From the NCBI GenBank assembly GCA_002269645.1, contig NIVC01002728.1, forward strand, positions 81,819 to 145,818: DNA of 64,000 bases. Reading direction: 5' to 3'. The stretch is from Macrostomum lignano. Taxonomy: Eukaryota. Numbering within the stretch: position 1 is the stretch's first letter; every line of letters begins with the position of its first letter. Positions 726-45,688 of this stretch are shown here, piece after piece. The notes beneath the pieces are model-generated. The model saw only the letters and a list, made by a program, of their open reading frames with translations. It made no database searches and had not been told where the DNA came from. The translations under genes were made by a program, and so were the position numbers.

Positions 726-1146
726 CATTTTACATAGATTTCAAGTGTTGCGTCCTTCTGCTTTAGTAGTCCTTGGGCTCACCCTTCCAGATCCTTAGTT
801 AAAAAGTAATGCTTATTTAAAAGTAGTAAATAATTTTTACATGTAGCAACAACACTTGATCACGCTTCGCAGAGCGTCTGTATCTGGAAAATTGTGCTCA
901 GCGCTCCGACAGCGGCCACTGCAGTCTCGCTATTGACAACCAGATCATACAAGAGTGGACTCAGTGCTCGTCTACGGCTGTAGAGCCGCATCCGTGGTGG
1001 AGGGTAATGAATTGGATTCACTTATACTAACTTTGTCAAGAACTTTAGCCGAACTGTAACCTATAACTTCCAGGTTGAAACCCAATAGGGGAGGGGGCCA
1101 GCCTATTGGGGGGGGGGGGTTGGCCAACCCTCCACAATAGGGGAGG

Positions 1147-1273
1147 GTTGGCTATTTAATTTTCATGCTGAATGCATGAAGATTGGTCGCCCACCTCCGG
1201 CCCCTAGTCACCAGGGCCAGGTGCCAACGGTGTCGCCGTCAACTTGACAGAGCGGCAAACAAAGATGGCGACC
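1147..1273 (+). ncRNA. Candidate HDV-like self-cleaving ribozyme at the RTE 5' end (atypical L3)
   Basis: Manual pairing: P1 1147-1152/1223-1228, P2 1185-1191/1267-1273, P3 1193-1195/1220-1222, P1.1 CC1197-98/GG1229-30, P4 1235-38/1253-56, hairpin in J1/2. Not tested computationally. Confidence 0.4.
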
Positions 1274-4200
1274 CATAGAGGACGGCGGAGTGTGCACAGC
1301 TGTGAACGCCGACGCACACGCTTTAATGCCCAACGCAATGCACTGCGCACTGCTGCCCGCCAGCTCAAACAGGACTCGCGGCCTGCCCAGCAGGAGCCTG
1401 CTAGAGGACTGGACACATTATCCTCCCCAGTCCCCCGCACTGCACCCGCTAGCAGAACAATCGAGAAATTTGAAAGTCAAAACCAGCTTGATAACTGCAC
1501 AAGACTTGCTACCTTCAACGCTCGAACGCTCACTGCCTCCTGGAGACTGCATGAGCTAACCAAGCTGGCAAAGAGCATGAACATCTCCATTCTGGCTGTC
1601 CAAGAACACCGCAGGAGCACCGAAGAGTGCGTTGATCCAGGCCTTGGCTGGCAGTTCCGAGCCGCTCCAGCCTCAGCCCAGGGCTCTGGAGGCATCGGGT
1701 TTCTGCTGTCACCTGGTGCCTCAAGGGCCCTTCTGAATGTCAGCTTCCCAACCAACCGCCTCGGCATTGCCTCTTTTGCCACGAAGGACAGGCGCCTTCA
1801 TGTAATCTGCGTCTACGCCCCCACAGCTCCTCGCACAGCTGCTGATCCTACCGAGACTGAGTCAATGTATGACCACCTGGGATCACTCATCAACTCGGTC
1901 CCTGATCGCGACCTGCTTTTTGTGGCTGGAGACTTCAACGCGCCACTGTCCCCTGACGGCCGTCTGGTGAAGAACAACTGCGGCTCCACCAACACCAACT
2001 CGGACTTCCTGTCAACTTTCATTCACTCTCAAGACCTGATTGCAGCCAATGGTGTCATGCGGCAGCGGTACAACAAGCTACCCACCTTCTTCGGCCCAAA
2101 TGGACGGACCACCAGGCTGGACTGGATTTTGTTCCTATCGGCAATCAGGTCTTGACTGCGCAAAGTGGTCAATATCCGCCCCAGCTGCGTGAGGTCCGAC
2201 CATTCTCTGCTGGCCTGCGACATCGACTGCCGTTGGAAAAAGTTCAAGGCTGGCCCACCGCACCCCCTCTGGGCAGATCTGAGAAACCCAGACACGCGCA
2301 GTGCGTTCATTGAAAAGCTGCAAAATACTCCGGCCCTGAATGAATCGGCGGACGCCTTCACCAGAGCTGTTGAGAAAGCTGCCTCGACCCTACCAAAACG
2401 AACACCGCACCAGCCAAAAGCCGTCTGGGACTCCGACGAGGAGATCTCCATCGCTAGGCGCGACGTGCAAAGAACAACCGCAGTCTTTGGCCAAGACAGT
2501 GAGCAGGCTGAAACAGCCCGGGCCCAACTTCGCGACACGCATGCCCGGAGGACCGAAGCCTTTGTCCAGGAGGCTGTTGCTGAGATTCAACTAGCAACAG
2601 ACAACTGCCGGCACACAGCGGCCTGGCGCGCCATCAACCGCCTGACTGGCAGGAAGCAGAGGGCCAATGCCACTGTAGGTGCTGAGTCCATACACCATCG
2701 CAAAGCCCTGCTGGCCACTCACTACCACAATGTGCTCAACGCCCCACCACCCTCTGCTGATTTGCTACCGATCGAAAACTTTACCCCGGCTGAGCCCTCG
2801 ACTTTTAACCCCGGCCCGCTGACTGCCTACGAGGTGAACCGAGTGCTCAGAACCATGTGCCCCGACGCTGCCGCCGGAGTAGATGGCATTCCACCCAGGG
2901 TGCTCAAGCTGCCAGAGCTGACACAGGACATCACAGCTGTGCTCAACAAGCACTGTCCGCTTGGAGGCAACCCAGATGCTACTGCTGCTGACAACTGGCG
3001 CACCTCTAAGATCGTCTCCATCCCCAAGAAGGGCGCATCCACCAGTCTGGACAACCAACGCGGCATCGCTCTGGAATGCACTCTGGCTAAGCTGCTCAAT
3101 GCTATACTGCGTAATCGGCTGCTTCCTGGCCTCAACCAAATGATTCTGAGCCTCCAAAGTGGCTTCAGGCCCGGTCGCTCGACAACAGAGCAGATTGCAG
3201 CCTTTCGAGCAGTCGTCGAGGCCTGTAAAACTCACCAAAGAGCTGTGTCAATTGTCTTTGTGGACTTCCGCAAAGCTTTTGACTCAGTGTGCCGTCGAGC
3301 GATCGCGTGGCTGCTCGAGCACTATGGCGTCCCTCCGGCTCTTATCGTTGCAGTGATGGACCTCTACACCAACAGCAAAGCCTTTGTCCAAACCAGCGAT
3401 GGCCCAACTGAGGACTTCTGCACCAGCTCTGGAGTCCTCCAAGGTGACACGTTGGCTCCACTGCTCTTCATCCTTGTCGTCGACTACGTGCTGCGCCGAA
3501 GCCTCACAGAGGAGGACAGCTACCTGCTGGCGTCACGCCGGAGCTCCCGCCGCGGTGCTGCCCCTTTGCCCGCCCTCGCGTACGCCGACGACATCGCCCT
3601 GCTGTGCCGCAGTCCGGCTGCCGCCCAGAGAGCGCTCTTGAGACTCTATGAGGAGAGCGCCCGAGTCGGACTGCAAATCAACGCACGCAAGACGGAAGTG
3701 CTGCACGTGGGCACCGATGCAGCACCAATCCTGACCCTACCAGATGGACAAGTCATTTCTGCCTGCAGAGACTTCCGGTACCTGGGCTCCCTCGTGATGA
3801 GCCCTGACTCCATCATCGCCGACCGGAGGTCACAGGCCTGGCGCGCGGCTCATCTCCTCAGGGAGGTCTTCAGCTCAGCTGCCAACGACGACCTGAAGAT
3901 GCGCCTGTTCCGCGCTGCCGTAGAGCCAATCTTCCTGTACGGACTGGAGGCAGTGCCAATGACCGACTCGAGGTCTCGAGCCCTGGACGCTGCCTACCGA
4001 TCGCTGCTGCGGTTCGCCCTTGGCATCCATTACCCAGAGCGGCTGCCGATGGACCAGCTGATGGCGAGAGCCCGTGTGCCTCAGCTCAGTGCCACTCTCC
4101 AGCGGCGCCGGCTAATGCTCGTCGGCCACTGCCTCCGCAGCTACGGCAGAGGGGAGCAAAATCCCGCTGGCGCTAACCCTGCTGCATCAGCCAACCGAGC

Positions 4201-4369
4201 GTCTCCGACGGGGCCAAGGCCGGACCGCCACGCTGACCGCCACGCTTGAGTCTGACCTTCAAGCCATTAACCTGACCCCACAATCTGCCACAAACTGTCC
4301 TTCTCGTCTTTTCTGCGAGCGCGTGCGCGCAAGACGCCCACCATAATATCTTTGCGTCCTTATATATAT
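1147..4369 (+). mobile_element. Near full-length RTE-like non-LTR retrotransposon (single APE-RT ORF, ATG 1265 to ~4346) inside an intron
   Basis: APE motifs ATFNARTL, AVQEHR, YAPT, GDFNA, LDWI, SDH. RT motifs RGIAL, QSGFRPGRST, FVDFRKAFD, GVLQGDTLAP, YADD, YLGS. In-frame TGA at 2153-2155 and a +1 frameshift near 4165. (TA)n tail. TSD-like ATAGGGGAGG at 1137-1146 and 4370-4379, with another copy at 1085-1097. Confidence 0.95.
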
Positions 4370-6080: not shown

Positions 6081-6811
6081 CGCTTTCACGCCTCGTTTCA
6101 CACTCTACACTGTACGTCATCACACTGGCTACAACAAATATCCACTTTTTAGATAGTACATTTTAAGATTGTTTAACATGTAGATCTAGCGGAAAAGTAG
6201 CTGTTTTCTCATTCATTATAGTTAATTGAATTAAATAATCTTACTTCATAGCTAACATCGGAAGTGATTTATAGGCGCTGACTACTTGAGATGGTAGTTT
6301 TTTAAAGAAACTAGAAGTACAAGCTATTAAGATAGAGCAGGCAATACATCGACTGAAACATAATTAGAGATAACTGTGCACACAGTCCGCATTGACCCAT
6401 GTACATTGGCATATTCATTGTGCTACAACCAACTAAACCCATTGCAAGGCTCACTTGGAAACGCCAGCTTACGTATCTAAAGTGGTAATTCACACCGCGC
6501 CTCTACCTGACGCGGCAATGCAAAGCGCTCTCAACCAATTTAACATTTATGCTGGCGGAAGAACTTGCTATAGTCATAATGCAGCAGCTTCATTCTCCAG
6601 TCGATCGTTTCCGTGCGACACGTTCACCGATTACATCGATTTGACCAGCGATAGAAAGGATTCCGTAATGTCCCTGTGCGAAGTGGAAGTCTATGGAAAG
6701 GCGCTTGCGTTCCAGGAACTCGAAAATGGAGCTGCGTAAGTTTGGAAAATTGCTCGCAAATACGTAAAATAGTGGACCATGGATGACTGTTTTTAGTATT
6801 AGCACATACTT

Positions 6812-8290
6812 TGTAGTATTGCGAAAATAATTGAGGCGTGAAACGCGGTGGTTCGTTTGCTTTAATTTTTCTTTAATTGTTTTCCGTGTGGAATCCATTC
6901 CGTGCTGTATATTTATATACGTGTTGATAGAACATTCCGCAATCCGGAAAGTTCGAGAAGCAGTTTCTAGAAAGGGGTGCGCGGGAGTTCAAAATACCAA
7001 ATATAGAAAGTGTGTGTTTACGCGGAAGTTTCGAGAATATAAGTATTGTACTTACTGTACGCTATCTTATAACGTATACACGCGTTGTTTAGTTGAACTT
7101 TCTAGAATATGAAGATTCAAGCATGTTATAGAATATTATAGAAAATAGAAATACGCTACAATACTTATAATATAGTGAATACACTACAATAGTTCCCCCG
7201 CCGGAGACGGAGTCTCAGAGGGGTACAAAATTTACTGGATAAATGTTTAGTTAACTATACGCGTAAACGGAATTTTTACAATGAAGTCTTGGATATGAAA
7301 CTACACGAGCATATTGTACGTGTGCATCCATATACTGTAAATGCGATAAATGGTAATGTACATGCATTGCGGAGGCTAGCTATATGAACAAGTCTATGTA
7401 CAAGTCAGAAGTAGAAAAAGTCTTTTCTGGGGTTGAAGTGCACTCGTCGTCCACTCCTGGTTCGAGTTGGCGTCTGCTGGGTATTGTCCTCACTGGCTGT
7501 TGTCGACGGTGTCGTCTGTTGAGTCGCCTCGTCCTTTTTCTCCCTTTCGTTTGTCGTCGTCTCGTCCTGAGGAGCCTCCCGAGGGTTTCGGCTGGTAGGT
7601 GGCGTTTGGACCGACTTCGGTTGCTGTAGGCTTGCAGAACGGCATGGCTTCAGACGGTCGATTGAGATTGCTTCCTCTTGTCCGGCTCGTGTCTCGACTA
7701 TGAAGAACTTGGATGTGTGCCGGACGACGGTGTAAGGTCCTGAGTATGGCGCTTCGAGCGGCTTTCGAACTCTATCTACCCGGATCCAGACTTTCTCGGC
7801 CGTCCAAAGGTCTTTCGGGGTGTAGGTCTTGTTAACGACTGGTTGCCGTGGCTGATGTTCAAGAAGTTGATCGAGGTTCAACTGGATCGTCGCGGGGTCT
7901 GAAGCGTTGACTAGGACTCGAGGAAGCATCGGATTTTCGCCTGTGAGCCTGGTGAATGGGCTGACACCTGCATCATCTGGTGCGATGTGCATCACAAGCA
8001 ATGCTAGAGGCAGGTTGTCAAGCCATGAAGCTCCTCGCGCTTTGAGCATGGTCTTGAGAGTTCGATGTGCTCTCTCCACTTTCCCGTTGCACTGTGGATG
8101 GTACGCCGTGGTGCTTAGCCTATCGAAACCAACAGCTGACGAGAGGATGAGGAAGAGCTCCGCTTCGAATTAGGTCCGCGATCCGTAAGGACGTAGAGTG
8201 GGACTCCAAAGCGCGAAATCCACGTTGTAATGAAGGCCGTTCCAATACTCTGCGCTGTGACTGTCTCGAGTGGCGCTGCTTCGAGCGAAT
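6812..8290 (-). mobile_element. 3' end of a Ty3/Gypsy LTR retrotransposon: integrase C-terminal half, PPT and 3' LTR (6812-7188)
   Basis: Minus strand reads WISRFGVP..LTDRG, YHPQCNGKVERAHRTLK, GPY, ISIDRLKP. Purine tract GGCGGGGGAAC precedes an LTR bounded by TGTAG...CTACA. Confidence 0.9.
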
Positions 8291-8430
8291 TCCGGTTGTT
8301 TCGCCCCCAAACCGTTTCGGCCAAGTACATTTCGCCCCTAGACCATTTCGCCCATAGTCCGTTTCGCCCATAGTCCGTTTCGCCCATAGACCAGTTCGGC
8401 AACGGGCGTTTCGGCCAAAATGGTGATTAT
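8291..8430. repeat. ~20-bp subrepeat array (TTTCGCCCATAGTCCG-like), probable MITE arm truncating the Gypsy integrase
   Basis: About 6 TTTCGSCC-containing units begin exactly where integrase similarity stops. Confidence 0.6.
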
Positions 8431-8557
8431 GTATTTTAGAGATACAGCCATACATGTATCTTTATTTCTTTTTTCAATGCTAATTTTTAGTTTTAATTTG
8501 TAATAAAATATGATCTGAATTGTTGCCACAACAATTGTGTTATTGCGTTATTGCGAT

Positions 8558-11500
8558 TTTTTTTTTTAGTAGTAGTAGTAGTAGTAGTAGTAAGTTGGCT
8601 CAGGCAAGAAGCCTGTTTGGCCAATATATTTCTATGTATTTAAGATTGCTTCAGGAATAGGAGACAATATTTTAGCACTAGTTATTTAATTATGATTAGT
8701 ACGAGTTTTGCAAAATGGTATTTGAAAGAACGCGGAAAAGTTATTAACGATACTTGGACGACTAACGAAGCGAAAGAAAAAGCAAGGAGTTAAAAAAAGT
8801 ATTGCAGTTAATAAAAGTAAAAACGAAAGAAAAATGAACAAAAACGAACTTCGAAGGGACTTTACGTTAAGCGAATGACGACGATTTAACTAGGTATTAG
8901 ATAGGAAACTAATTAAATACTAATTAAGTGCTAATTAAGTAGGAAATTAAAAATGGGAAAGGCGGATTTATTTCACTGCTGATATGTCTGTTTCAGTTTG
9001 CATAACTGTTTTAGCTATTCATGACTTCATATATTTTAGCTACACCAGTGAGCTCTTTTCTGACTCTTTTTTCATTTGTAGCATATCCTAACTTGTGTAC
9101 TTGCTTGTCATTTAGGAGGTACTGACAGAAGTATTTTTTTCTGAACTTTTCGGTTTGTGGACATTCGGTCAAGTAGTGTAGGATATCGGAACCATTTCTC
9201 GCTCCACACAGTCTACATGGTTCATGAGAGAAAATGTTGGGTGTAATTTCGCATTTCAGTTTTAGGAGGGTTGTTAGGAATTTTTTGTTTCTAAAAGTGC
9301 ATGGAAAGTAATCTGAAAGGTCAGGCCTGCAGATTTTTTTGTAGAGATAGGCGTTTTTATAGAGTTTAATATGTTGCTGATTCTCTAGCTTTTGGCTAAG
9401 TTCTCTTTCTCTGTGTATCTTGAGGTGCTTTTTCACTAGGTATTTCTCGTTATTAAAGCTTTGGGAAAGTTTATCTTCAGTTAGTGCTTTTAAGTCTATA
9501 CTTTCCAGTTTCTTTAGTATATTTGTTTTCCATGGATTTTTTTGGCTGGTGTTTGAGTAGAAAATTTCTAGTGTCGTTTGGCAAAGTTTTTGATGTCTAA
9601 TCTTCAGCCAGTAGGTAAGATAGGTTTTAGCAATTCGTTGGGAGATTGGAGTAAGCTCAAGTTCTGATGATATCACACTGTTGCTAGCAAATTTTGGTAG
9701 ATTGAGGAGATATTTGTAGAATTTCAGCTGAATGTTATCAATAGCTTTTGTTTCAGAAATGGTAGCCAGAGGGCCCCAGAGCTCACAGCCGTACGTGATA
9801 ACGGGGGTGACAAGCGCGTCGAATAGTCTGCGAATGAGTGTGATGTCCAGGGACGTATTTTTTACCTTGTGGAGTAGGGAAAACATAGCTGAATAACCCT
9901 GCTTAGTTTGATGTTCAATACATTTTTTAAAGCTGTTTTTTGGTTCAAAAATAATTCCCAGGTATTTAAATTCATTTACTTCCTCTATTTCTTGGTTGTC
10001 GTAGATTATTTTTGTAGCAAAACTTTCTGTGTCATTTTTTTGTCTGGTACTGCCCTGCATAATCTTTGTTTTGCTTGCATTAACTTTCAAGTAGTTTTGC
10101 TTGCAGTAATTTTCCATAGTTGTAAATGTGTCTTGAAGTTCATCTTTGTTTTTAGCTAGAATGGCTTGATCGTCCGCAAAGAGCAGGATGAGTGGGAAAG
10201 CAGATCTCGTAAGAGAGCGCCTAGCGCTAGAGAGTTCAAGATATTCAACAATGTCGTCAATATATAGTTCAAAAAGGATGGTAGAGAGAGGGTTACCTTG
10301 AAGAACACCTTTAGATATTGGGATTGGCTGGGTTTCATCATCATCATCATCTTTCTTTAGAATGAAACAGGCATTTTTATGCATGTTCTTGATAAGTTCT
10401 GTCATTTGACCTTTAATACCTTGGTTATCCGTTTTGTGCCAAAGGGTCGGTTGATTTAAGCTATCGAAGGCTTTTTCATAGTCAACAAAACCGATAAAGA
10501 GTTCATTTTTGTTGTAGATGGACTGGTTTATAATGTTGTAAAGATTAAAACATTGGTCGATTGTGCTGTGATTGGGCTTGAAACCGTATTGGTATTTTGA
10601 TATAAGATTGTTAGCGTATGCTAGGTTTTCAAGTCTGGATTTAATAATTTGGCAAAAGAGCTTGCCAAAAATTGGTTGAATGCAGATTCCTCTGTAATTG
10701 TTGGGGTCGGCACTGCTGCCTTTGTTTTTATAAATCGGATGAAGAGTATTTGTAATCCAACTAGTTGGAAAGGTTCCTTGTTTGAGTGCTTCGTTGAAAA
10801 GTGAGCATAGGAGGTCAGTAAGTTCGTTTTCAAGGTATTTGAGTGTTTCTACATATACTTTATCATGCCCAGGTGCTTTGTCGGTTTTGAGCTTTTTAAT
10901 ATGTTTTATAACTTCTTCTTTGGTGAATGGGGCATTGAAATCCTCTAAATTAGTCAGAATAGGGTTGTCAAGGTGAAGATTGTATGCTAGTCTAATGCTG
11001 CTGTCTTGTTCAGTTACAAGATTTTGAAAGTGTATGACAAATTTTTCGTCAATTGCTGCATTGTTATTGGGGTGGTTATGTGGTTTCAGTAATTGCCAAA
11101 GCTGTCTTGTATCATTTTGAATATAAGCCTGGTTGATCATGTTTTCTGCACACAGTATTGATTCATGTTTCCAAGAAATCAAGCTTTTTTCATATGTTTT
11201 TTTAAGCTGTATTTTGGATGCGAGGTTGCTACTTGTGGGGAACATCTTATATCTTCTGCTGGCATGCCTGGTGGCATTTCTCAGGTCTTTAAGAAATTGT
11301 GGCAATGCTGAACAGAGAGGGTTTTTTGTTTCTACTGTGATTTTACTTTGGATTTGCTGAACTTTCTTGCTTAAATTATGGATGAAAGCTGGGTTTTGCA
11401 TGTCGAGATTTGGGATTTTATTCTCCAGATCCTTTAGATCATCTGAGAAGCAATTGATATGTTTTTCTTGTTGTGGGGTGGGTTTATCTAGTTTTCTTAA

Positions 11501-11640
11501 TATCCGGAATTTTGTTCTTTGGTTATTGGTTGCTTGTTTTGTTTCTGTAATCTCTGCTGTGAATTTACATGATAATGAGAGTATAATTTGATTGTAGATT
11601 TTGTTTATTACGATTGAGAATTAAATTACGAGTTTTTTTA
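8558..11640 (-). mobile_element. 5'-truncated RTEX/Crack-like LINE with an uninterrupted 796-aa RT ORF (9011-11401)
   Basis: KAPGHD, YRGI, QYGFKPNHST, FVDYEKAFD, GVLQGNPLS, LFADD, FKYLGI, ITYGCELWG and a C-terminal CRLC...H...C motif. 3' tail is (TAC)n plus poly(A) at ~8558-8592. No APE motifs were seen. Clade assignment is tentative. Confidence 0.92.
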
Positions 11641-12029
11641 AAGTCATTCCTTTTCAAAAGTGCGTCAATTATTTAAACCAATTTGTACAATCAGAGGGTG
11701 AGAAAGGATTTCTCGGTCAATTAAAGCACAAAGCATAAAACCGTGATAAAGTATAAATGTAAAAATGCTGTATAAAATTAGTCATTTCAATCAAATTACA
11801 AAGTGTAAAACCCTGATCAAGTAAAGTAAAAACTGCTGTACATATGTAAGTCATTTCAATCTTCGGCTTCGGTTATGCAAGGAGAACGAAGGTAAATTAC
11901 CAGAAATAAAAGGATAAGATTAAAACTCTAAAAATGTTGTATAAAAGCACGAGAAACCTTGGGCAAGCTGAGTCCATGTCGGAGCAGATGTTAATGCGAA
12001 AACGAACCAGTTACTTAGCAAAAGTAACG

Positions 12030-12530
12030 GTAGAAGCGCCGGACAGAAATGTCGAGACCGAGGAACTCGTGATACCAGTGGAGTCCAGCTCATCTCAGAG
12101 TTTTTCCAGCTGCTCTTGCTGCCTTCGATATGTCCGCCTCCTCAGACGAAGCACCTTTCCTTCTGTGCTGGTTCCAGCCTGGCTGTAAGCGGAATTTGCT
12201 GACACTCACTGTCGATCAGTAGCAGGAGGCAGTAAAACTGAAGAAAACCGCGAGTGGCCTTTCGGTTCAGACGGTTGTGCCAACCTTCAGCATCGTTGTT
12301 TGTCCTGTACAGCTGGCGGTAAGATGACCATGACGCCGGTGGCCACATTGAGCTCCTAATCCATGTTTCCTGGATGTAGGACATCCAATGCTGCAGTCCT
12401 TGGCTGGTGTTGCCATCCCCCGCATCCACCACAGTTGATGGCATGCTGACGACTACTTACAATTTTTTCACACAATAGACATAAATCACTACTAGCTGCA
12501 TCCATATAGTCCACAGAGTTGCTGAGATCT
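12030..12530 (-). mobile_element. Internally deleted MULE/MuDR-like DNA transposon remnant
   Basis: A PHD-like start (CLLCEKIVSSRQHAINCGGCGGWQH) is joined directly to a transposase C-terminus (YIQETWI...W..Y....RTNNDAEGWHNRLN), followed by a frameshifted basic tail with a stop. Confidence 0.75.
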
Positions 12531-13175: not shown

Positions 13176-13224
13176 GTAGCTAGTGCAACAATTTCCTTAG
13201 CTCTATAGTGGCTCCTTTAAAATT

Positions 13225-14193
13225 GGCATGACGCTTACTTTTACGTTTGAAATTGTGTATCTTTTATGTTTGACATGGTGGCTCTTTAATGTTTGACATG
13301 GTGGCTCTTTTATGTTTGACATGATGGCTCTTTAATGCTCTACATGGTGGCTTTTTTATTTTCGACATTGTGGCTCTTTAATGTTTGGCATGATGGCTCT
13401 TTGATGTTTGACATGGAGTCACGAATATACTTGACATGGTGACTCGTTAATGTTAGACATGGTGGCTCTTTAATGTTTGGCATGATGGCTCTTTGATGTT
13501 TGACATGGAGTCACGAATATACTTGACATGGTGACTCGTTAATGTTAGACATTGTGGCTCTTTAATGTTTGGCATGATGGCTCATTGATGTTTGACATGG
13601 AGTCACAAATATACTTGACATAGTGACTCGTTAATGTTAGACATGGTGGCTCTTTAATGTTTGACCTGGTGGCACCTTAATGTCTGTAATGATGGCTCTT
13701 TAATGTTTGAAATGGTGGCTCTTTAATATTTGACATGGTGGCTCTTTAATGTTCGACATGGTGGCTTTTTAATGTTCGACATGGTGCCTCCTTAATGTTT
13801 GACATGGTGGTCCTTTTATGTTTGACATGGTGGCTCTTTTATGTTTGACATGATGGCTCTTTAATGTTTGACATGGAGTCACATATATGTTGGACATGGT
13901 GGCTCTTTAATGTTCGACATGGTGGCTCTTTAATGTTTGACATTGTGGCTCTTTTATGGTTGACATGGTGGCTCTTTTATGTTCGACATGGGGGCTCTTC
14001 TATGTTTGGCATGGTGGCTCTTTGATGTTCGACATGGTGGCTCTTTTATGTTTGGCATGGTGGCTCTTTTATGTTCGACATGGTGGCTCTTTAATGTTAG
14101 ACATGGTGGCTGTTTAATTTTAACATGGTGGCTCTTTAATGCTCGACATGGTGGCTTTTTAATGTCCGACATGGTGCCTCTGTAATGTTTGAC
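13225..14193. repeat. 23-bp tandem array (GACATGGTGGCTCTTTAATGTTT)n
   Basis: GACATGG recurs at 13272 and 13295; about 40 diverged units with local higher-order blocks. Confidence 0.95.
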
Positions 14194-14550
14194 AAGTCTA
14201 TGGAAAGCCTCTGACCTTCCAAGGGTTGGATAGCGGAGAGGCGTGAGTTAAACGAGCTTGATCATCTGTGGCTAAGGTGGTTAATTTAGGCGAGCTTGAT
14301 TTTTTAGATTGGCATATTCAAAATGGGCAGATTCAGAATAGCAGATTCAGAATAGCAGATTCAGAATGGCAGATTCAGAATGGCAGATTCAGAATGGCAG
14401 ATTCATAATTGGTAGGTTCAGAATGTCAGATTCAGAATGGCAGATTCAGAATGGACAGGTTCAAAATGAGCAGGTTCAGAACGGGCAGGTTCAGAATGGC
14501 AGATTCAGAATGGGCAGATTCAGAATGGCAGATTAGAAATGGCAGAGTCA
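14194..14550 (+). pseudogene. Orphan duplicate of the last 49 bp of paralog-3 exon 3, its donor site and the start of intron 3 (14-bp array)
   Basis: 14194-14242 matches 34951-34999 with one silent change. GTGAGT donor and the following ~70 bp are nearly identical, then (GATTCAGAATGGCA)n at ~14315-14550. Confidence 0.9.
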
Positions 14551-14559
14551 GACTGTATA

Positions 14560-33290: not shown

Positions 33291-36200
33291 ATGCATTTAA
33301 AATGGTTTTCAAGTCTACCAGATCGAAATTGCGTATTTCTGGCACTGCTACTACAGATTTTATTTTCAACCAATGTTGTGGGGCTTCAACTCTTTAAAAC
33401 TCGGCAAGTGATGTACCGCATGCTTGGATACGACAACTTCAATGAAGGTGAGTAGCTAAAGCCATGGAGACTTAGTGCTCTTTTTAAGCAACCTATTGTG
33501 AGGATCGGTATCATTACAGAATCTCATGATGAAATCTTCCTTTATTACAGAATCTCATGATGAAATCTTCCTTTATTACAGAATCTCATGATGAAGTCTT
33601 CCTTTATTACAGAATCTCATGATGAAGGCATCCTTTATTACAGAATCTCATGATGAAGGCATCCTTTATTACAGAATCTCATGATGAAGGCATCCTTTAT
33701 TACAGAATCTCATGATGAAGGCATCCTTTATTACAGAATCTCATGATGAAGGCATCCTTTATTACAGAATCTCATGATGAAAGCATCAACTCAGATTTTC
33801 AGACAAATCTATCCTCTTGGATCTAGTGCACTCTTAACCGTATTTGCAGATTTACAACAGTAAATCTGGACTTGCGTATCTGCAATTTACATTGAATTGC
33901 TTCCAGAACGCCTACACCTGGAGCGCTGTCGCCAGAGCTCCTCATCCGGGAACTGCAATCTGGCTATTGACGGCAGCATTGTTCAAGAATGGACTCAATG
34001 CGTCTCGACTGTACCTGAGCTCAGTAGCTTTTGGAAGGTGAGTTCAATTCTACTCATTGTTATTGCAATTATTGATAAGTGGGATTGATATGCATTCCAA
34101 CTGATATTAGAAATATATAGTCAACTATATCAGCATCCTATTTGAGCCATGGCATCTCAACAACTCCCCAATGAGCCATGGCATCTCAGCAACTCCACAT
34201 TGAGCCAATTGGCATCTCAGCAACTCCACATTGAGCCAACTGGTATCTTAGCAACTCATCCATTGAGCTAATTATCATCTCAGCAACTCCCAATGAGCCA
34301 ACTGGTATCTGAGCAACTCCCCCATTGAGCCAATTGGCATCTCAGCAACTCCACATTGAGCCAATTAGCATCTCAGCAACTCCCCAATGAGCCATGGCAT
34401 CTCAGCAACTCACTCATTGAGTCATAGCATCTCAGCAACTACCCCATTGAGCTAATTATCATCTCAGCAACTCCACATTGAGCCATGGCATCAGGCGCTG
34501 CTGCAGTAGTTCACCGCTCAAGGCCGCTAAGAAGAGGCCATATTGTTATCGTGAAGTTTCAAAGGGCCCTCGGGCTGGATAGAGAGGATTTTCGAGGTGG
34601 AGTTCACGGGTCTAGACAATAACTGGGCAAACAATTTACTCCCCACTTCACTTTTACTCGTGCAGTCTTTAGAGAACTGACACGTCAATAGTTATTATTT
34701 TCTCCGCTTAAGGCCGAACTTGAGACGCCTTCTTACATCGCTCGAGTTGTCATTCACACGGCGAAGCTGCCAGACGAGGCGATGCTCAACGCCATGCACG
34801 ATTTCGGCATATACGCCGGTGACACCACCTGCTATCGGCACATTTCGTCACAGTCGTTCATCACTCGATCGTTTCCTTGCGACGCAATGGCAGACAGAAT
34901 TTTAATTCGAAGCTTCCGTGTCAACAGCATCATGTCATTGTGCGAAATCGAAGTCTATGGAAAGCCTCTGACTTTCCAAGGGTTGGATAGCGGAGAGGCG
35001 TGAGTTAAAAACGAGCTTGATCATCTGTGGCTAAGGTGGTTAATTTAGGCGAGCTTGAGTCTTTAGATTGGCATATTCAGAATGGCAGATTCAGAATGGC
35101 AAATTCAGAATGGCAGATTCAGAATGGCAAATTCAGAATGGCAGGTTCAGAATGGCAGATTCAGAATGGCAGATTCAGAATGGCAGATTTAGGGCAGATT
35201 CAGAATGGCAGATTCAGAATGGCAGATTTAGGGCAGATTCAGAATGGCAGATTCAGAATGGCAGGTTCAAAATGGCAGATTCAGAATGGCAGATTCAGAA
35301 TGGCAGATTCAGAATGGCAGATTCATAATTGGTAAGGTTCAGAATGTCAGATTCAGAATGGCAGATTCATAATTGGTAGGTTCAGAATGTCAGATTCAGA
35401 ATGGCAGATTCAGAATGGGTAGGTTCAGAATGAGCAGGTTCAGAACGGGCAGGTTCAGAATGGCAGATTAGGAATGGGCAGATTCAGAATGGCAGATTAG
35501 GAATGGCAGATTCAGAATGGCAGATTCAGAATGGGCAGGTTCAGAATGAGCAGGTTCAGAATGAGCAGGTTCAGAACGGGCAGGTTCAGAATGGCAGATT
35601 AGGAATGGGCAGGTTCAGAATGGCAGATTAGGAATGGGCAGATTCAGAATGGCAGATTAGGAATGGCAGATTCAGAATGGCAGATTAGGAATGGCAGATT
35701 TAGAATGGCAGATTCAGAATGGGCAAGTTCAGAATGGGTAGGTTCAGAATAGCAGATTCAGAATGGGCAAATTCAGAATGGCAGACTCAGAATAGGTAGA
35801 TTCAGAATGGCAGATTCAGAATGGCAGATTCAGAATGGCAGATTCAGAATGGCAGATTCAGAATGGCAGATTTAGAATGGCAGATTCAGAATGGCAGATT
35901 CAGAATGGCGGGTTCAGAATGGCAGGTTCAGAATAGGCAGATTCAGAATGGCAGGTTCAGAATGGCGGGTTCATAATATACTTCTGAACAAATTTTTCTA
36001 AACCAATTCAAGAGAGATTGGCTTCTCAGGTTGCTTAATGAGCTCATCGGCGGAGAACAGCAAATGCGAAGACGCCACCGACCGGAATTTCGCCGTTTTC
36101 CATGGCCAGAGCGGCAAAAAGTGTGCATTGACTCTGCCGGGAGAAGAGGAGTACTCGCGGTCCTGGTTGTCCGTTTATTTAATGACGCCGACGCTAATTA

Positions 36201-36942
36201 AACACGTGAAAGTTTACAATCGGATGGACAAGTGCTGCAACAATTTGCTAAATAAATTTGCCATCCTAGTTAATTCAGCTAGCTGCGCTGTACACGAGTC
36301 TATTGAACCGTTTATAAGCAAGGTATTTCGATGCACTCGATTTGGCAACAATGTCAAACTGGAGAGCCGAGTGTTGAAATCGGCCATCACAGTGTGCCAA
36401 ATACAGGTGTTTGGCTACAAAACGCTCTTGTATCCCGACGTGAGGCATGGTGAGTCCAACGTTTTGCTGTGTCTGCTTCAAAACAGTGATTGCTCTATGC
36501 TATGCATGTATAATGAAGCTAAAGCCCCTGGTGCCCCTGGTGCTAAAGTCCCTGGTGCTAAAGCCCCTGGTGCTGCTGTAGCATGCAGGTTTATAACAAT
36601 TCTAACTACGCCTATGAAGATGTCTGATAAAAAGCACTGATCTGAAACCCTTCTGCAATATCCCCAGAGCATAAAGGATGCTTTCATGACGATCCGGATA
36701 ACCCGGAAATGGAACAAGTCATCAGCTACTCGTTTATGGAACCAAGAAAATGCCACCGAATGTGCAAACGCCTAAACAAGCTCTACTTCGGCTTGCAAAA
36801 TGGTCGAGCCTGCCTTTGCGGCAACAAGTACGGCCGGTATGGCAGCGCCGCAATAGAAAAGTGCAATCTCGGATGCGTGAGCGACGGAGGCATGGCCTGC
36901 GGAGGACGGAACTTCACCACAGTCTATGAGATTCTCGTGTGA
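33291..36942 (+). CDS. Secreted protein, signal peptide - F-type-lectin-like x2 - WSC (paralog 3), 428 aa
   Basis: Exons 33291-33447, 33907-34037, 34713-34999, 36013-36449, 36668-36942 total 1287 nt, with the same intron positions and phases as paralog 2. N-terminus MHLKWFSSLPDRNCVFLALLLQILFSTNVVG; motifs LAIDG, LCEIEVYG, YNRMDKCC, GCFHDD...LQNG.ACLCG. The acceptor at 36013 is weak and was chosen by phase and homology. Confidence 0.88.
33512..33787. repeat. 31-bp tandem array x9 (TATTACAGAATCTCATGATGAAGGCATCCTT) in intron 1 of paralog 3
   Basis: Period measured between 33543 and 33574. Confidence 0.95.
34140..34490. repeat. ~30-bp tandem array (GAGCCA..GGCATCTCAGCAACTCC.CATT) in intron 2 of paralog 3
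   Basis: About 11 diverged units. Confidence 0.9.
35068..35968. repeat. 14-bp tandem array (GATTCAGAATGGCA)n filling intron 3 of paralog 3
   Basis: About 60 units occupying ~900 of 1013 intron bp. Confidence 0.97.
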
Positions 36943-39700: not shown

Positions 39701-42700
39701 TTACAGCAGTTCAAATACAAGATTCCGATTATCGCCGCCGCAATACTGCAGATGCCGGCCTTCGCAGGGCATGCCGCACTCGGAGTCCGGGACTTTGCCG
39801 TGCTTTCCGAATTTGCTGCCGCACCAGCACTGCATCCCGCCTTGAATGCCGAAGTAGCGTTTGCCCAGTCTGCGGCAGATTCTGTCGCATTTGTTCACCT
39901 CCATGGCCGACAGCGACACTGGGTCTTTGAAGTCGCTTAGGTCCGGATCCTTTGGGCTGTCTTTGAAGCAGCCTTTATACTCTGCGAAATTGGGAATGTT
40001 AGGTGAGTCAGTGAGTAAGAGCAAGTGTGACAGTGAGTCAGAACAGGTTCTTCAGGTGAGTCACAGTAGCTGTGTCAGGTGAGTCAGAGTAGCTGTGTCA
40101 GGTGAGTCAGAGTAGAGCTGCGTCAGGTGAGTCAGAGTAGCTGTGTCAGGTGAGTCAGAGTAGAGCTGTGTCAGGTGAGTCAGAGTAGCTGTGTCAGGTG
40201 AGTCAGAGTAGCTGTGTCAGGTGAGTCAGAGTATCCGTGTCAGGTGAGTCAGAGTATCCGTGTCAGGTGAGTCAGAGTATCCGTGTCAGGTGAGTCAGAG
40301 TATCTGTGTCAGGTGAGTCAAAGTAGAGCTGTGTCAGGTGAGTCAGCTTAGCTGTGTCAGGTGAGTCAGTAGCTTCGTCAGGCGAGTCAGAGTAGCTGTG
40401 TCAGGCGAGTCAGAGTAGCTGTGTCAGGCGAGTCAGAGTAGCTGTGTCTGGTGATTCAGAGTAGAGCTGTGTCAGGTGAGTCATAGGAGCTGTGTCAGGT
40501 GAGTCAGGGTAGAGCTGTGTCAGGTGAGTCAGGGTAGCTGTGTTGGGTGAGTCAGAGTAGCTGTGTCAGGTGAGTCAGAGTATCCGTGTCAGGTGAGTCA
40601 AAGTATCCGTGTCAGGTGAGTCAGAGTATCCGTGTCAGGTGAGTCAAAGTATCCGTGTCAGGTGAGTCAGAGTATCCGTGTCAGGTGAGTCAGAGTATCC
40701 GTGTCAGGCGAGTCAGAGTAGCTGTGTCAGGCGAGTCAGAGTAGCTGTGTCAGGCGAGTCACAGTAGCTGTATCAGGTGATTCAGAGTAGAGCTGTGTCA
40801 GGTGAGTCAGAGTAGCTGTGTCAGGTGAGTCAGAGTAGAGCTGCGTCAGGTGAGTCATAGTAGCTGTGTCAGGTGAGTCAGGGTAGAGCTGTGTCAGGTG
40901 AGTCATAGGAGCTGTGTCAGGTGAGTCAGAGCTGTGTCAGGTGAGTCAGAGCTGTGTCAGGTGAGTCATAGTAGCTGTGTCAGGTGAGTCAGGGTAGCTG
41001 TGTTGGGTGAGTCAGAGTAGCTGTGTCAGGTGAGTCAGAGTATCCGTGTCAGGTGAGTCAGGGTAGCTGTGTTGGCTGAGTCAGAGTAGCTGTGTTGGGT
41101 GAGTCAGAGTATCCGTGTCAGGTGAGTCAAAGTATCCGTGTCAGGTGAGTCAGAGTATCCGTGTCAGGTGAGTCAGATTATCTGTGTCAGGTGAGTCAGT
41201 AGCTTCGTCAGGCGAGTCAGAGTAGCTGTGTCAGGTGAGTCAGTAGCTTCGTCAGGCGAGTCAGAGTAGCTGTGTCAGGCGAGTCAGAGTAGCTGTGTCA
41301 GGCGAGTCAGAGTAGCTGTGTCAGGCGAGTCAGAGTAGCTGTGTCAGGCGAGTCAGAGTAGCTGTGTCAGGCGAGTCAGAGTAGCTGTGTCAGGTGATTC
41401 AGAGTAGAGCTGTGTCAGGTGAGTCATAGGAGCTGTGTCAGGTGAGTCAGGGTAGAGCTGTGTCAGGTGAGTCATAGTAGCTGTGTCAGGTGAGTCAGGG
41501 TAGAGCTGTGTCAGGTGAGTCAAAGGAGCTGTGTCAGGTGAGTCAGAGCTGTGTCAGGTGAGTCAGGGTAGCTGTGTCAGGTGAGTCAGAGTAGCTGTGT
41601 CAGGTGAGTCAGAGTATCCGTGTCAGGTGAGTCAGGGTAGCTGTGTTGGCTGAGTCAGAGTAGCTGTGTTGGGTGAGTCAGAGTATCCGTGTCAGGTGAG
41701 TCAGAGTATCCGTGTCAGGTGAGTCAGAGTATCCGTGTCAGGTGAGTCAGATAATCTGTGTCAGGTGAGTCAGTAGCTTCGTCAGGCGAGTCAGAGTAGC
41801 TGTGTCAGGTGAGTCAGTAGCTTCGTCAGGCGAGTCAGAGTAGCTGTGTCAGGTGAGTCAGTAGCTTCGTCAGGCGAGTCAGAGTAGCTGTGTCAGGTGA
41901 GTCAGTAGCTTCGTCAGGCGAGTCAGAGTAGCTGTGTCAGGTGATTCAGAGTAGAGCTGTGTCAGGTGAGTCAGAGTATCTGTGTCAGGTGAGTCAGAGT
42001 AGAGCTGTGTCAGGTGAGTCAGGGTAGACGCCAGGTCAGGTCTTCAGTCATTATTCATCTACAATGCTCGTAGAACTACGAGTATTTGGCGATGTGCCTA
42101 GAAAAATCCCCCTTTTTACCCCTCAACTGCTCCGGTGTCAAGGCAGCGGTGTGACCGAGAACTTGCACTTCGCAAAGAGTCACGCGACCTGTTTTGCTCA
42201 TGTGTTGAACCCGCACATTGCTGCCAAATAAGTTGCACCGAAATGACTTAATATTGAACGTAGCTGGACTGTTGTATCTGCAAATGAATATCAATTTTTT
42301 TAAGTTTAACTTTTCATTTCAAGGGCCCAGTTTGAATTCAGATAAAAATTTAGTAAGCAAAACGCCAGAGACACTAATAGACACAGAGAAGCTCAAAAGT
42401 GACGCGTTCATACTATGAGACACCTGTCCATCACATGAGACACCTGCTTTTCTCACCTAAGATATCTGTCTAAGATAAGACACCTGCTAATCACAGTAAC
42501 ACCACTTGTTCATCACACGGGACACCTATATATCACGTGAGATACCTGTCTACCTCATGAGACCCCTGTCCATCTAAGATAAGACACCTGTCTACCTCAT
42601 GAGACATCTGTTTATCTAACCTAAGACACCTGTCCATCACATCAGACACCTGTCCATCACATCAGACACCTGTCCATCACATCAGACACCTGTCCATCAC

Positions 42701-44825
42701 ATCAGACACCTGTCCATCACATCAGACACCTGTCCATCACATCAGACACCTGTCCATCACATCAGACACCTGTCCATCACATCAGACACCTGTCCATCAC
42801 TGTGACGTTGCTAGTTTAAATGGTCCCGCAAAAGGGCCGTTGGACTATAGTTTCCCTTGCAATTTCTCATTTTGATTTCTCCGATAGTTTATTGTAACGT
42901 TTACTTATAGTAGCGTGCAAATAATCTGTATCAACTGCTATTTCACTGTGTATTTGGTAGGCCTTGCGCCCGTCTGTGAATTTTGGCACGATCGATAATT
43001 TCAAGTTCTCTCGCCAGCCAATGAAAACTCTCCGTGTTTTACGCTACCCCCTTTTGCGCTCTTTATTAACCCCCGCCTGGCGGCGGGCTGGGGGCCTCCT
43101 CACTTCGCGGTTCTTGTTTTCCTTCTCCTGCCTTCTATCTGCCTCCTTATCTCTCGCCACGGCTCCTCTGTCTGGGCCAGCCTGTTTACACTGCCTGCCA
43201 CTGTCTGCCACGGCTAACGCCAATCTCACCACTACGCATCTGCCTCTTCTGTGCTCATCGCCGCTACTCACCACGTTGCATCGCCTTGCATCACTCGCCT
43301 ACCACTCGACTACAATTTCTAATTCACCTTCAATTCAAAACCATTGTTGCAGCCGCCAGTGTCCCAAAAGCACAATAAGTTCTGTATTAGCATTAACCAA
43401 ATTTGAATATTGATCTCAACAATAAAACAACTACGGCAGTTACCTGCCTTGTATGCCAAGTGCTCCGCTACACAATCCGCTTATCAAGACTTACTCGATT
43501 CATTTTGGGACTACGACTTACGACAACTCTCGTAAAACGGCCCTTCTAAGGGTCATAGCCTCTACGCCAATAACGTGACAATCACATCAGACACCTGTCC
43601 ATCACATCAGACACCTGTCCATCACATCAGACACCTGTCCATCACATCAGACACCTGTCCATCACATCAGACACCTGTCCATCACATCAGACACCTGTCC
43701 ATCACATCAGACACCTGTCCATCACATCAGACACCTGTCCATCACATCAGACACCTGTCCATCACATCAGACACCTGTCCATCACATCAGACACCTGTCC
43801 ATCACATCAGACACCTGTCCATCACATCAGACACCTGGCACCCGACTCACCTGCCGCACCGCTGCGCGCTAACGGTGACCGCGAAATTGGTCAAATCCTG
43901 CTGACAACAGTCGATCCGATTGTAAAGAATAACTTGCTGCACTATCGCTGGCAGCTTAAATGATGTGGACCACCATTCGTACTCTCCCAGCTGGCTCATG
44001 GCGCAGTAGCCTTTGTTAGCATGCTGATGCTGGGAGTTCCCGTCCACCGCGAACCAACAGTTGTTAGTACCCTTGACACTGCTCTGATCGCAATCGGAAA
44101 GCTCTATTTTCCTGAAATATTACACAGTAGAATAAATATTCCTGGTCAGGCATCTGGGATCCAGCATCTGAGATTTGGGATTTGGATTTGGGATTTGGAT
44201 TTGGGATCTGGGATCTAGGATCTGGGATCTAGGATCTGGGATCTAGGATCTGGGATCTAGGATCTGGGATCTAGGATCTGGGATCTAGGATCTGGGATCT
44301 AGGATCTGGGATCTAGGATCTGGGATCTAGGATCTGGGATCTAGGATCTGGGATCTAGGATCTGGGATCTAGGATCTGGGATCTAGGATCTGGGATCTAG
44401 GATCTGGGATCTAGGATCTGGGATCTAGGATCTGGGATCTAGGATCTGGGATCTAGGATCTGGGATCTAGGATCTGGGATCTAGGATCTGGGATCTAGGA
44501 TCTGGGATCTAGGATCTGGGATCTAGGATCTGGGATCTAGGATCTGGGTAATCACGATACTTACGGAGGCGGATACTGCAGTATGGTCGGAAATGACAGC
44601 GTGGCACCTCTCACTTGCACGTCGCACACAACAATTGCCGCATCCTCCATTGTGCTCTTGATCTCTATATAGCTTGTCAGGATATCGCAGGGAAAGGTTT
44701 TAGTCAGAAATGACGTGTTAGATAAGTGCGTGTAGCAGACCTCACCACCGCCGCTGATTGTGAACTCCATCAGGCCGTCCTGTAAGCGAAATACAAAACG
44801 CTTTATGTTCTCTATGTATCTTGAG

Positions 44826-44866
<41 letters not shown>

Positions 44867-45688
44867 GTTTTACAAACCTTCATCCCGAGTCGTCTCCAGT
44901 CCGAGTTGATGATTCTCACGCTAGACACGTAGGCCGGGTTCTCAAGGTAGCCCTTCCAGCTAGCTTTGTTTTCGGTGTCCGTGTGGGCGCACTGGCTGAA
45001 CTCGTCGCTAACAGAGTCGTCGATGGCCATGACGCAGGCGTCTGTGTTGCTGCTCTGCTCGCAGCTGCTGAAGTGCAGCTTGGCTAAATGGATTCGTAAA
45101 TAAAAAAGCATTGCACAGTTATTAAAAACATTGAAATTCTACAAAAGTATCCCCAAGGTGAAATATCCCCAGGGTGAAATATCTTCAAGGTGAAATATCC
45201 CCAAGGTGAAATATCCCCAGGGTGAAATATCCTCAAGGTGAAATATCCCCAAGATGAAATATCCTTAAGGTGAAATATCCTCAAGGTGAAATATCCTCAA
45301 GGTAAAATATCCCCAAGGTGAAAAATATCCACAAGATGAAGCATCCTCAAGGTGAAATATCCTCGGGTAAAAATATCCCAGAGGCGCAATATCCTCGATG
45401 TAAAATACTCAAACGGTGAGACAGCCGGAATGTTACCCAGAATCCTCAAGGACAAATGTCATCGGAGTGTGGAAAACCAAGTTCAAAGCCAAGAGCCATA
45501 AACAATAAAATCATGAATTGTACATGTTAAGAAGGCAAAGTTGATAAAAAAACAAAGAGCTCACCCTCTCCTGTCCTGCCTCCCACCATGGCGATCACTT
45601 TTTTTCTACTCTTGTAGATTCGAGTGCCAGCTGGAGCTTGAGTCAGGCTGCTCAAAATCAGGGCCGCAACGAGCCATTTTAGTTGCAT
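39701..45688 (-). CDS. Secreted protein, signal peptide - F-type-lectin-like x2 - WSC (paralog 4), 414 aa
   Basis: Exons 45688-45565, 45083-44878, 44779-44565, 44111-43851, 42277-42120, 39981-39701 total 1245 nt, all GT-AG with compatible phases. Signal MQLKWLVAALILSSLTQA; motifs MAIDD, CAHT, VCDVQVRG, FAVDGN, EWW, YNRIDCC, LCEVQVLG, YKGCFKD..YFGIQGG.QCWCG..CGG. Confidence 0.9.
40030..42025. repeat. 2-kb ~23-bp tandem array (GTGTCAGGTGAGTCAGAGTAGCT)n filling the last intron of paralog 4
   Basis: Roughly 85 units of 21-25 bp with higher-order blocks, in a 2138-bp intron. Confidence 0.97.
42413..43837. repeat. 20-bp tandem array (ATCACATCAGACACCTGTCC)n, split by a solo LTR
   Basis: Units at 42413-42800 (diverged toward the left end) and 43581-43837. 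Confidence 0.95.
42801..43580. mobile_element. Solo LTR (780 bp) with a 5-bp TSD
   Basis: Ends TGTGACGTT...AACGTGACA; ATCAC duplicated at 42796-42800 and 43581-43585. Confidence 0.88.
44150..44548. repeat. 14-bp array (GGGATCTAGGATCT)n filling intron 3 of paralog 4
   Basis: About 25 near-perfect units, each made of two 7-bp halves. Confidence 0.97.
45148..45400. repeat. 16-bp array (CCCCAAGGTGAAATAT)n in intron 1 of paralog 4
   Basis: Direct observation. A (GA)n run lies at 44830-44862 in intron 2. Confidence 0.9.

Follow-up and report, generated by a model that had tools for sequence, protein, structure and literature searches.

A tandem cluster of Macrostomum lignano genes that join two F-type lectin-like domains to a WSC domain

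Has a flatworm joined F-type lectins to a second putative ligand-binding module, and could the resulting proteins still bind fucose? F-type lectins are textbook examples of domain shuffling among proteins of innate immunity and fertilization. The question is raised by a 64,000-nucleotide stretch of the Macrostomum lignano assembly Mlig_3_7 (contig NIVC01002728.1, positions 81,819–145,818; hereafter, the window), the base composition of which is patchy (35–59% GC). A preliminary description of this stretch had proposed a tandem gene family encoding secreted proteins with two F-type lectin domains (FTLD1 and FTLD2) followed by a WSC domain. Here we report that the window carries three complete genes of this kind (g2, g3 and g4), a truncated copy (g1) and an exon relic, together extending from 873, the first base of g1 exon 2, to 45688, the ATG of g4. 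The predicted proteins retain the F-type lectin framework and an intact WSC domain, and all six FTLDs of the complete genes deviate from the canonical fucose-binding motif.

Gene models, domains and constraint

The listing of open reading frames (ORFs) in the window consists of fragments alone, two of which match WSC strongly (Pfam E 4e-17 and 3e-19), and several others are mutually similar pieces of ~95–200 amino acids (aa). In tblastn searches of these pieces against the window, they form four colinear sets, and paralogous exons match one another at E 1e-9 to 1e-40; together with the Pfam E values of the WSC exons (1e-17 to 1e-19), these matches exclude chance. Manual splicing of the ORF pieces recovered the genes (Table 1). 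Specifically, g2 (plus strand, 22516–27887) and g3 (plus strand, 33291–36942) comprise five exons each and encode 432 and 428 aa, while g4 (minus strand, 45688–39701) comprises six exons and encodes 414 aa, the coding sequences being 1245–1299 nt long. All introns have GT-AG boundaries, phases match at every junction, and there are no internal stops. Thus g2 and g3 are followed by g4 in the opposite orientation, and upstream of them lie the truncated g2-like copy g1 and what remains of a truncated g3-like copy.

The three models agree with database entries. The g3 protein is identical to GenBank PAA55627.1 (BOX15_Mlig025061g3), while those of g2 and g4 are ~100% identical over their full length to BOX15_Mlig008416g2 and BOX15_Mlig006795g2, with one residue differing in each case; in remote searches, g2 was represented by its database twin, P0008. 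All three proteins are already in GenBank/UniProt as 'hypothetical' or 'WSC domain-containing' (Mlig008416, Mlig025061 and Mlig006795). The Mlig_3_7 annotation is a genome-guided RNA-seq transcriptome, built with StringTie/TACO and mapped de novo transcripts, with ORFs called by TransDecoder (PMC5730564). Because these GenBank models are transcript-derived, the joins between the FTLD and WSC exons are supported by transcripts, and the three complete genes are transcribed.

The C-terminal module is unambiguously a WSC domain as judged from its sequence. PF01822 covers model positions 1–82 or 2–82 with scores of 57.8, 49.7 and 64.7 bits in the three proteins (Pfam gathering cutoff, 27.8 bits), and in a search of the Protein Data Bank (PDB) with the family profile, the closest solved relative is the WSC domain of Kremen-1 (E 3.5e-13). 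The eight WSC cysteines are conserved in all three paralogs (residues 326, 353, 357, 373, 375, 390, 394 and 402 of the 414-aa protein). Although the module resembles the WSC domains of Kremen-1 and of fungi (PF01822) in its ~82 residues and eight cysteines, its setting differs: the WSC domain of Kremen sits between the kringle and CUB domains of a membrane receptor, and fungal WSC domains belong to wall sensors or enzymes, whereas the flatworm WSC domain closes an FTLD protein that is predicted to be soluble. WSC is also the best-conserved module, with an identity of 43–45% between g4 and g2/g3, compared with 31–38% for the FTLDs.

Both sequence and predicted fold identify the two upstream domains as F-type lectin domains. 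Since single exons gave only sub-threshold matches to F5_F8_type_C_2 in Pfam, the assignment was settled with the full-length proteins and a profile search of PDB. PF22633 scores 39.0 bits in g4, 29.6 bits in g2 and 27.3 bits in g3, the last being just under the cutoff of 27.8. The three-paralog profile matches FBP32 of striped bass (MsaFBP32, 3cqo) in two stretches (E 1.5e-12), followed by Sm-hPAF (2.6e-7), SpX-3 (4e-5) and AAA (8e-5), with Streptococcus mitis lectinolysin, S. pneumoniae SpX modules and eel agglutinin among the matches. Apart from WSC proteins and weak matches at E above 0.03, all PDB matches are F-type lectins. FTLD1 is the more diverged domain (g4 FTLD1 against FBP32, E 0.008) and is tied to FTLD2 through matches within the window at E 1e-9 to 1e-10.

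An AlphaFold2 model of the 414-aa protein built from a 3-sequence alignment was too poor (pLDDT 50.6), and a 34-sequence alignment was used instead (pLDDT 83.9, pTM 0.71). The predicted model displays the F-type jelly-roll β-barrel fold. Foldseek against PDB ranks FBP32 (3cqo) first (E 9.7e-16, 313 columns across both domains), and the single predicted FTLDs resemble 1k12, 2j1r, 2j1t, 2j22, 4gwi and 3lei with a TMt of 0.65–0.78 and a root-mean-square deviation of 2.7–4.1 Å, at 16–24% identity. A discoidin/CBM32 assignment was considered and rejected; the corresponding Foldseek matches have lower identity, and the sequence search returned no such protein.

The N-terminal hydrophobic cores, identified by eye, are WLVAALILSSL, CVFLALLLQILF and SLLLQLLLLLF; small residues occupy positions −1 and −3 after each of them. 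The proteins end immediately after the WSC domain with no membrane anchor. These two features suggest that the proteins would be secreted and soluble. The layout of putative signal peptide, leader, FTLD, FTLD and WSC given in the preliminary description is borne out, and the protein lengths stated there were reproduced by independent splicing. Its 'short basic leader' applies to g4 (six K/R versus one D/E), but the leader of g3 is neutral and that of g2 slightly acidic.

The paralogs, ~36% identical, have every one of the 22 mature-region cysteines in common (six in FTLD1, eight in FTLD2 and eight in WSC). The same three genes recur on contig NIVC01001769.1 (loci L001 and L002), which is homeologous or allelic to the window. 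When L001 is compared with the window, the g2 exons differ in one codon amid DNA that is 2–3% diverged (identity, 93.6–99.2%), while g3 has seven synonymous and two nonsynonymous differences (dN/dS, or omega, 0.08), which shows that g3 is under purifying selection between the homeologous copies.

Binding sites and proposed role

A review of F-type lectins (PMC5712786) gives HX24RXDX4(R/K) as the fucose motif and h2DGx as the cation motif. Both were read in the paralog alignment and in alignments made with HMMER to FBP32 and AAA. The fucose motif fails in six of six domains. Specifically, g4 FTLD1 keeps the His and the final R and has NS in place of NR (H/S/R), while in FTLD1 of g2 and g3 the His is replaced by S and NRx by HTA, with no final basic residue. 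FTLD2 keeps N-R-x-D-C-C in all three proteins, with M at the His position and D at the final basic position in g4 (M/R/D), L and L in g3 (L/R/L), and L or D and S in g2 (L-or-D/R/S). Two domains, g4 FTLD2 (AVDGN) and g3 FTLD1 (AIDGS), have an intact cation motif, and it deviates in the other four (AIDDS, AIDNQ, ATDRN and AFDRN).

Because the triad is missing from all six FTLDs, canonical fucose binding is not to be assumed, and the premise of the preliminary description that these domains bind fucose as known F-type lectins do does not carry over. Its statement that each protein pairs two glycan-binding modules is therefore unproven as regards the FTLDs. The roles that it put forward, in microbe recognition, mucus or adhesion, are guesses, and its caution about function was well placed. 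Similar degeneration has been described for the basic triad of Drosophila CG9095 and for some oyster isoforms (PMC5712786).

The comparison with MsaFBP32 illustrates what has been kept and what has been lost. Like the flatworm proteins, MsaFBP32 carries two tandem FTLDs in one polypeptide, which in the flatworm is putatively secreted, and NRxDCC, LCEVxVxG and, in two of the six flatworm domains, the calcium-site AxDG are common to both. However, MsaFBP32 has no WSC domain and an H/R/R fucose triad in each FTLD, whereas the flatworm proteins have lost the triad and possess an extra N-terminal disulfide pair per FTLD and a C-terminal WSC domain. FBP32-type binary tandem F-type lectins have a fucose site in each FTLD and assemble as trimers; the flatworm proteins share their tandem FTLD arrangement in the predicted model and lack the canonical fucose triad. 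These observations make it unlikely, to a marked degree, that the proteins are canonical fucose-binding lectins acting as innate-immune pattern-recognition receptors, like fish FBP32 and eel AAA, with WSC adding a second sugar specificity, a reading towards which the preliminary description leaned. The FBP32-like sequence and predicted fold of the FTLD pair, the two intact calcium-site motifs and a lectin-type fibrinogen-related gene that adjoins the cluster would fit such receptors, but the motif failure in every domain, with each of the substitutions listed above, argues against them.

We instead favour, at slightly better than an even chance, a reading in which the cluster encodes secreted, soluble, multivalent lectin-like binders of glycans or matrix, with WSC as the ligand module, the FTLD pair as an altered scaffold, and a family in turnover. 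The WSC domain, intact and the most conserved between g4 and g2/g3, would be the main ligand-binding or anchoring module, and by analogy with other WSC domains its ligand would likely be a polysaccharide such as β-glucan. The FBP32-like FTLD pair would form a rigid scaffold, possibly oligomerizing, with a non-fucose or lost sugar specificity. Together, the modules could cross-link or coat glycan-bearing surfaces, such as those of microbes, food diatoms, mucus or gametes.

Several points weigh against this proposal. The signal peptides were judged by inspection, the structure was predicted, from an alignment of 34 sequences, and the omega of g3 is based on nine substitutions. The degenerate FTLDs may bind nothing. 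A glycan ligand for WSC is an assumption, because the Kremen WSC domain binds a protein (Dkk), not a sugar. In the literature searched, we found no binding, localization or expression data for the three genes.

The Kremen precedent also raises the alternative that the proteins are protein-binding extracellular adaptors, with a Kremen-like WSC domain (Dkk binding or virus receptor) and FTLDs acting as discoidin-like protein or lipid modules. Consistent with this alternative, Kremen-1 is the top-scoring solved WSC relative, the sugar triad is lost, and discoidin and neuropilin b-domains are among the structural neighbours of the predicted model. However, identity to discoidin/CBM32 proteins is below that to F-type lectins, the motifs NRxDCC, LCEVxVxG, QSS and, in part, AxDG are retained, and no partner is known. 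We consider adaptors of this type unlikely, and return to the lectin-like binders proposed above.

Truncated copies, family turnover and neighbouring features

The count of three complete genes, one truncated copy and one exon relic in the preliminary description proved correct by tblastn, DNA identity and splicing. Exons 2 and 3 of g1 have intact ORFs with AG acceptor and GT donor sites, and its exon 1 is expected beyond the left edge of the window. The similarity of g1 to g2 ends at 6788, 50 bp into intron 3; tblastn within the window finds no FTLD2 or WSC similarity from 6788 to 22500, an interval of retroelement ORFs and satellites, and we accordingly rejected a downstream continuation of g1. 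Compared with g2, g1 has an omega of 0.61, and the conserved QSS motif is changed to QRS. The exon relic encodes ..VYGKPLTFQGLDSGEA followed by a GTGAGT donor. It lies within a segment (14194–14555) that is 89% identical to g3 34951–35302, keeps the 14-bp satellite of intron 3 and adjoins a 23-bp satellite array.

The homeologous contig differs in copy content. At the position equivalent to the relic, L001 has an un-annotated g3-like copy with intact exons 1–3, which is deleted in the window. In this truncated copy (564–2478 of L001), exon 3 matches g3 exon 3 of the window at 100% identity, while 18 of the 157 nt of exon 1 differ, suggesting gene conversion or a recombination hotspot. The differing copy content of the homeologs, the duplication and the two truncations in intron 3 support the birth-and-death evolution put forward in the preliminary description, in which the family would grow and shrink through tandem duplication, truncation within intron 3, and deletion.

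Both truncated copies break inside intron 3 (6735–6788 and 14243–14555). Truncated copies keep the signal-peptide and FTLD1 exons, although for g1 only exons 2 and 3 fall inside the window. In g3, intron 3 carries the 14-bp satellite AGAATGGCAGATTC. Intron positions vary as well: g2 and g3 split FTLD1 after 'PWWN/SFWK' (23827/25289 and 34037/34713) and encode FTLD2 in a single exon, whereas g4 splits FTLD1 ~26 codons further on (44878/44779) and also splits FTLD2 (43851/42277). Such differences between paralogs suggest that this young family has gained or lost introns or that introns have slid.

The truncations bear on whether the cluster is merely a decaying, non-functional set of expressed pseudogenes. 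Of the five copies, two have been truncated or almost deleted, g1 has the high omega noted above, and sugar-binding residues have been lost. By contrast, the ORFs and splice sites of the three full copies are intact on both homeologous contigs, further full-length, near-identical copies are present on other contigs, and the 22 conserved cysteines, the low omega of g3 and the transcript-derived annotation are at odds with decay. Wholesale loss of function is therefore hardly credible.

Table 1. Exons of the FTLD–WSC cluster and other features of the window
Feature	Position	Strand	Content	Support or detail
g1 exon 2	873..1003	+	Truncated g2-like copy; N-terminal part of FTLD1	80% DNA identity to g2 exon-2 region
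g1 exon 3	6449..6735	+	C-terminal part of FTLD1; gene end	ORF peptide 6455–6736 90% identical to g2 counterpart
Exon relic	14194..14243	+	Last ~50 nt of g3-like exon 3, donor, start of intron-3 repeat	DNA identity to g3
g2 exon 1	22516..22687	+	Putative signal peptide and leader	Splice model; N-terminus matches database twin P0008
g2 exon 2	23697..23827	+	N-terminal part of FTLD1	Splice model
g2 exon 3	25289..25575	+	C-terminal part of FTLD1	Splice model
g2 exon 4	26906..27336	+	Entire FTLD2	Splice model, PF22633
g2 exon 5	27610..27887	+	WSC domain and stop codon	Splice model, Pfam WSC E 4e-17
g3 exon 1	33291..33447	+	Putative signal peptide and leader	Splice model; protein identical to PAA55627.1
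g3 exon 2	33907..34037	+	N-terminal part of FTLD1	Splice model
g3 exon 3	34713..34999	+	C-terminal part of FTLD1	Splice model
g3 exon 4	36013..36449	+	Entire FTLD2	Splice model, Pfam
g3 exon 5	36668..36942	+	WSC domain and stop codon	Splice model, WSC 49.7 bits
g4 exon 1	45565..45688	-	Putative signal peptide and basic leader	Splice model; matches database protein P0001
g4 exon 2	44878..45083	-	N-terminal two thirds of FTLD1; intron site unlike g2/g3	Splice model
g4 exon 3	44565..44779	-	C-terminal part of FTLD1	Splice model
g4 exon 4	43851..44111	-	N-terminal part of FTLD2 (AVDGN, NRIDCC)	Splice model, FBP32/AAA alignment
g4 exon 5	42120..42277	-	C-terminal part of FTLD2	Splice model
g4 exon 6	39701..39981	-	WSC domain and stop codon	Splice model, Pfam WSC E 3e-19
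Non-LTR retrotransposon	1244..4249	+	In g1 intron; GC ~59%	Exo_endo_phos (303 aa) and RVT_1 ORF (694 aa)
Retroelement ORFs	7405..8455; 9011..11401	-	796-aa AT-rich reverse-transcriptase ORF and nearby ORFs	RVT_1, E 1e-30
LTR-retrotransposon remnant	59700..63200	both	GC-rich (~58%), several broken frames	RVT_1 and rve fragments
Minisatellites	13238..14194; 35065..35977; 40052..42027; 43581..43837; 44152..44548; 45974..46536		Fill cluster introns and spacers	
28-bp tandem repeat	1..264; 22828..23033		Upstream of g1 exon 2; g2 intron 1 (equivalent places)	
Fibrinogen-related gene	47840..49211	-	FReD/ficolin-like; adjoins g4 on the same strand	Fibrinogen_C over two ORFs, E 1e-21 and 6e-11
~194-aa ORFs	52649..53233; 55836..56417	+	Two paralogous-looking ORFs	Shisa_N, E 5e-4, sub-threshold, second ORF

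The window contains LINE- and LTR-type ORFs and abundant minisatellites. The LINE-like element in the g1 intron, a non-LTR (long terminal repeat) retrotransposon, may have been recently active. The retroelement ORFs at 7405–11401 occupy the space expected for the 3′ exons of g1; those near the reverse-transcriptase ORF have no Pfam match and look integrase-like by eye. Among the minisatellites, the last g4 intron carries 86 copies of a 23-bp unit and g3 intron 3 carries 64 copies of a 14-bp unit, and such arrays account for most length differences between the window and its homeolog. The 28-bp tandem repeat, CAGATCCTCAGTTGCTGGGCCAGCCTCC, yields long spurious ORFs (LGQPPRSSVAGPASQILSC...).

A further gene and two ORFs lie beyond g4. 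The fibrinogen-related gene has a signal-like N-terminal exon (MQSWTLITGLLLALACC...) and is annotated on the homeologous contig as a 384-aa protein. In the ~194-aa ORFs, a Cys-rich N-terminal part (..SYGDSFCCG..CCS.. and ..KSYCCGPAGNQKCCS..) is accompanied by a single hydrophobic segment and a tail rich in Pro; the ORFs may encode small single-pass membrane proteins.

Relatives of the family and its significance

A HMMER search of 1.84 billion cluster representatives returned 8,722 matches at E<=1e-3, most of which are WSC-only or FTLD-only proteins. We classified the best 150 of the 8,722 (at least ~138 bits) with domain HMMs built from the family, cluster look-up and Pfam; rarer proteins with both domains in other taxa may thus have been missed. 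In M. lignano, FTLD+WSC proteins are encoded by no fewer than four additional loci. Denoting FTLD as F and WSC as W, the proteins from this species are Mlig024563 (F-F-W, 434 aa), Mlig031442 (FTLD+WSC, 521 aa), A0A1I8GQJ8 (F-F-F-W), A0A1I8J2B5 (W-F-W) and A0A1I8J1D5 (W-F-W-F-W-F), as well as A0A1I8FQQ2 and A0A1I8FL15, in which FTLD and WSC co-occur. The first four share a species and a domain vocabulary with the cluster, and Mlig024563 aligns with the profile end to end (E 1e-100 for the cluster representative); however, they derive from separate loci and are ~33% identical, and A0A1I8GQJ8 looks, by eye, nearer to canonical lectins (H...NRLDCCSDRL).

Outside M. lignano, the pairing occurs among the best 150 of the 8,722 matches only in the hemichordate- and crinoid-derived predictions from Glandiceps talaboti (XP_077989192, W-F5) and Anneissia japonica (XP_033112682, W-W-F), respectively, and in one environmental sequence (W-F4). 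The two deuterostome entries are predicted proteins that, like those of the cluster, combine WSC and FTLD in one polypeptide (Pfam), but the order is reversed and the sizes differ; they were probably assembled independently. The lineage specificity claimed in the preliminary description therefore applies to the F-F-W order at about 414–434 aa, which is confined to M. lignano among these 150 matches, and not to the FTLD+WSC pairing as such.

The flatworm proteins also resemble mosaic F-type lectins (Drosophila furrowed/CG9095, Xenopus PXN-FTLD and sea urchin SpCRL), in which FTLDs are shuffled with extracellular modules, and CG9095 shares with the flatworm FTLDs a degenerate basic triad (PMC5712786). 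They differ in that WSC is not among the partner domains listed for F-type lectins, namely CTLD, pentraxin, CCP, TM and FA58C (PMC5712786). Our literature searches found no paper joining an F-type lectin with a WSC domain, nothing on F-type lectins in Platyhelminthes, and nothing relevant for WSC combined with fucolectin. The preliminary description did not recognize the architecture as a characterized family; no paper describing FTLD-FTLD-WSC was found, but the proteins themselves are already in the public databases. The cluster family thus adds a WSC-fused form to the known class of mosaic F-type lectins, from genes already databased as uncharacterized.

A further possibility is that the proteins are reproductive secretions (prostate or seminal-fluid, female-tract or egg-coat proteins) that evolve rapidly under sexual selection, which would explain both the lineage-specific expansion and the turnover. 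In M. lignano, an in situ hybridization screen for prostate-limited seminal-fluid candidates yielded many WSC-domain transcripts and some ficolin- or angiopoietin-like ones (Weber 2018, Table S1); given the latter, the neighbourhood of the cluster, with its fibrinogen-related gene, may constitute a secretory cluster of lectin type. Similarity to WSCD2 has been noted for Mlig-pro46 and several further candidates (PMC6953679), and RNA815_80.4, with two WSC domains, is required for a prostate-gland antibody staining (PMC4490696). The high divergence of the paralogs, with no close orthologs seen elsewhere in the databases, points the same way. Nevertheless, no identifier or annotation ties the three genes to the prostate candidate lists; the listed WSC transcripts (264–1111 nt) are all shorter than the coding sequences of the cluster, and none has an FTLD-type annotation. 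We found no lectin or FTLD term in Weber 2018, and the gene identifiers are absent from a full-text literature search and from the supplements of published M. lignano studies. In addition, selection on g3 between homeologs is purifying rather than diversifying. A reproductive role is accordingly rather improbable, and we retain the secreted lectin-like binders as our preferred reading.

Taken further, FTLD-FTLD-WSC could represent a Macrostomum-specific class of secreted lectins whose FTLDs have adapted to a non-fucose ligand and that act in a fast-evolving interaction, for example as seminal-fluid or gamete-coat proteins together with the many WSC proteins of the prostate secretome, or in the recognition of β-glucan-rich diatom prey; we advance this idea tentatively and regard it as doubtful. 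If it is true, an F-type fold and a WSC module would here be paired functionally for the first time. Since the genes are already annotated and the recombination of known modules is unsurprising, the value of the finding is incremental. M. lignano is genetically tractable, with working RNA interference and transgenesis, and is a recent polyploid. A WSC-fused branch without the fucose triad offers an inexpensive way to ask about the ligands of degenerate FTLDs, and the cluster may reveal roles of animal WSC domains beyond those in Kremen, polycystin and WSCD proteins. It is also a clean, small case of gene birth and death between the homeologous chromosomes of a recent polyploid.

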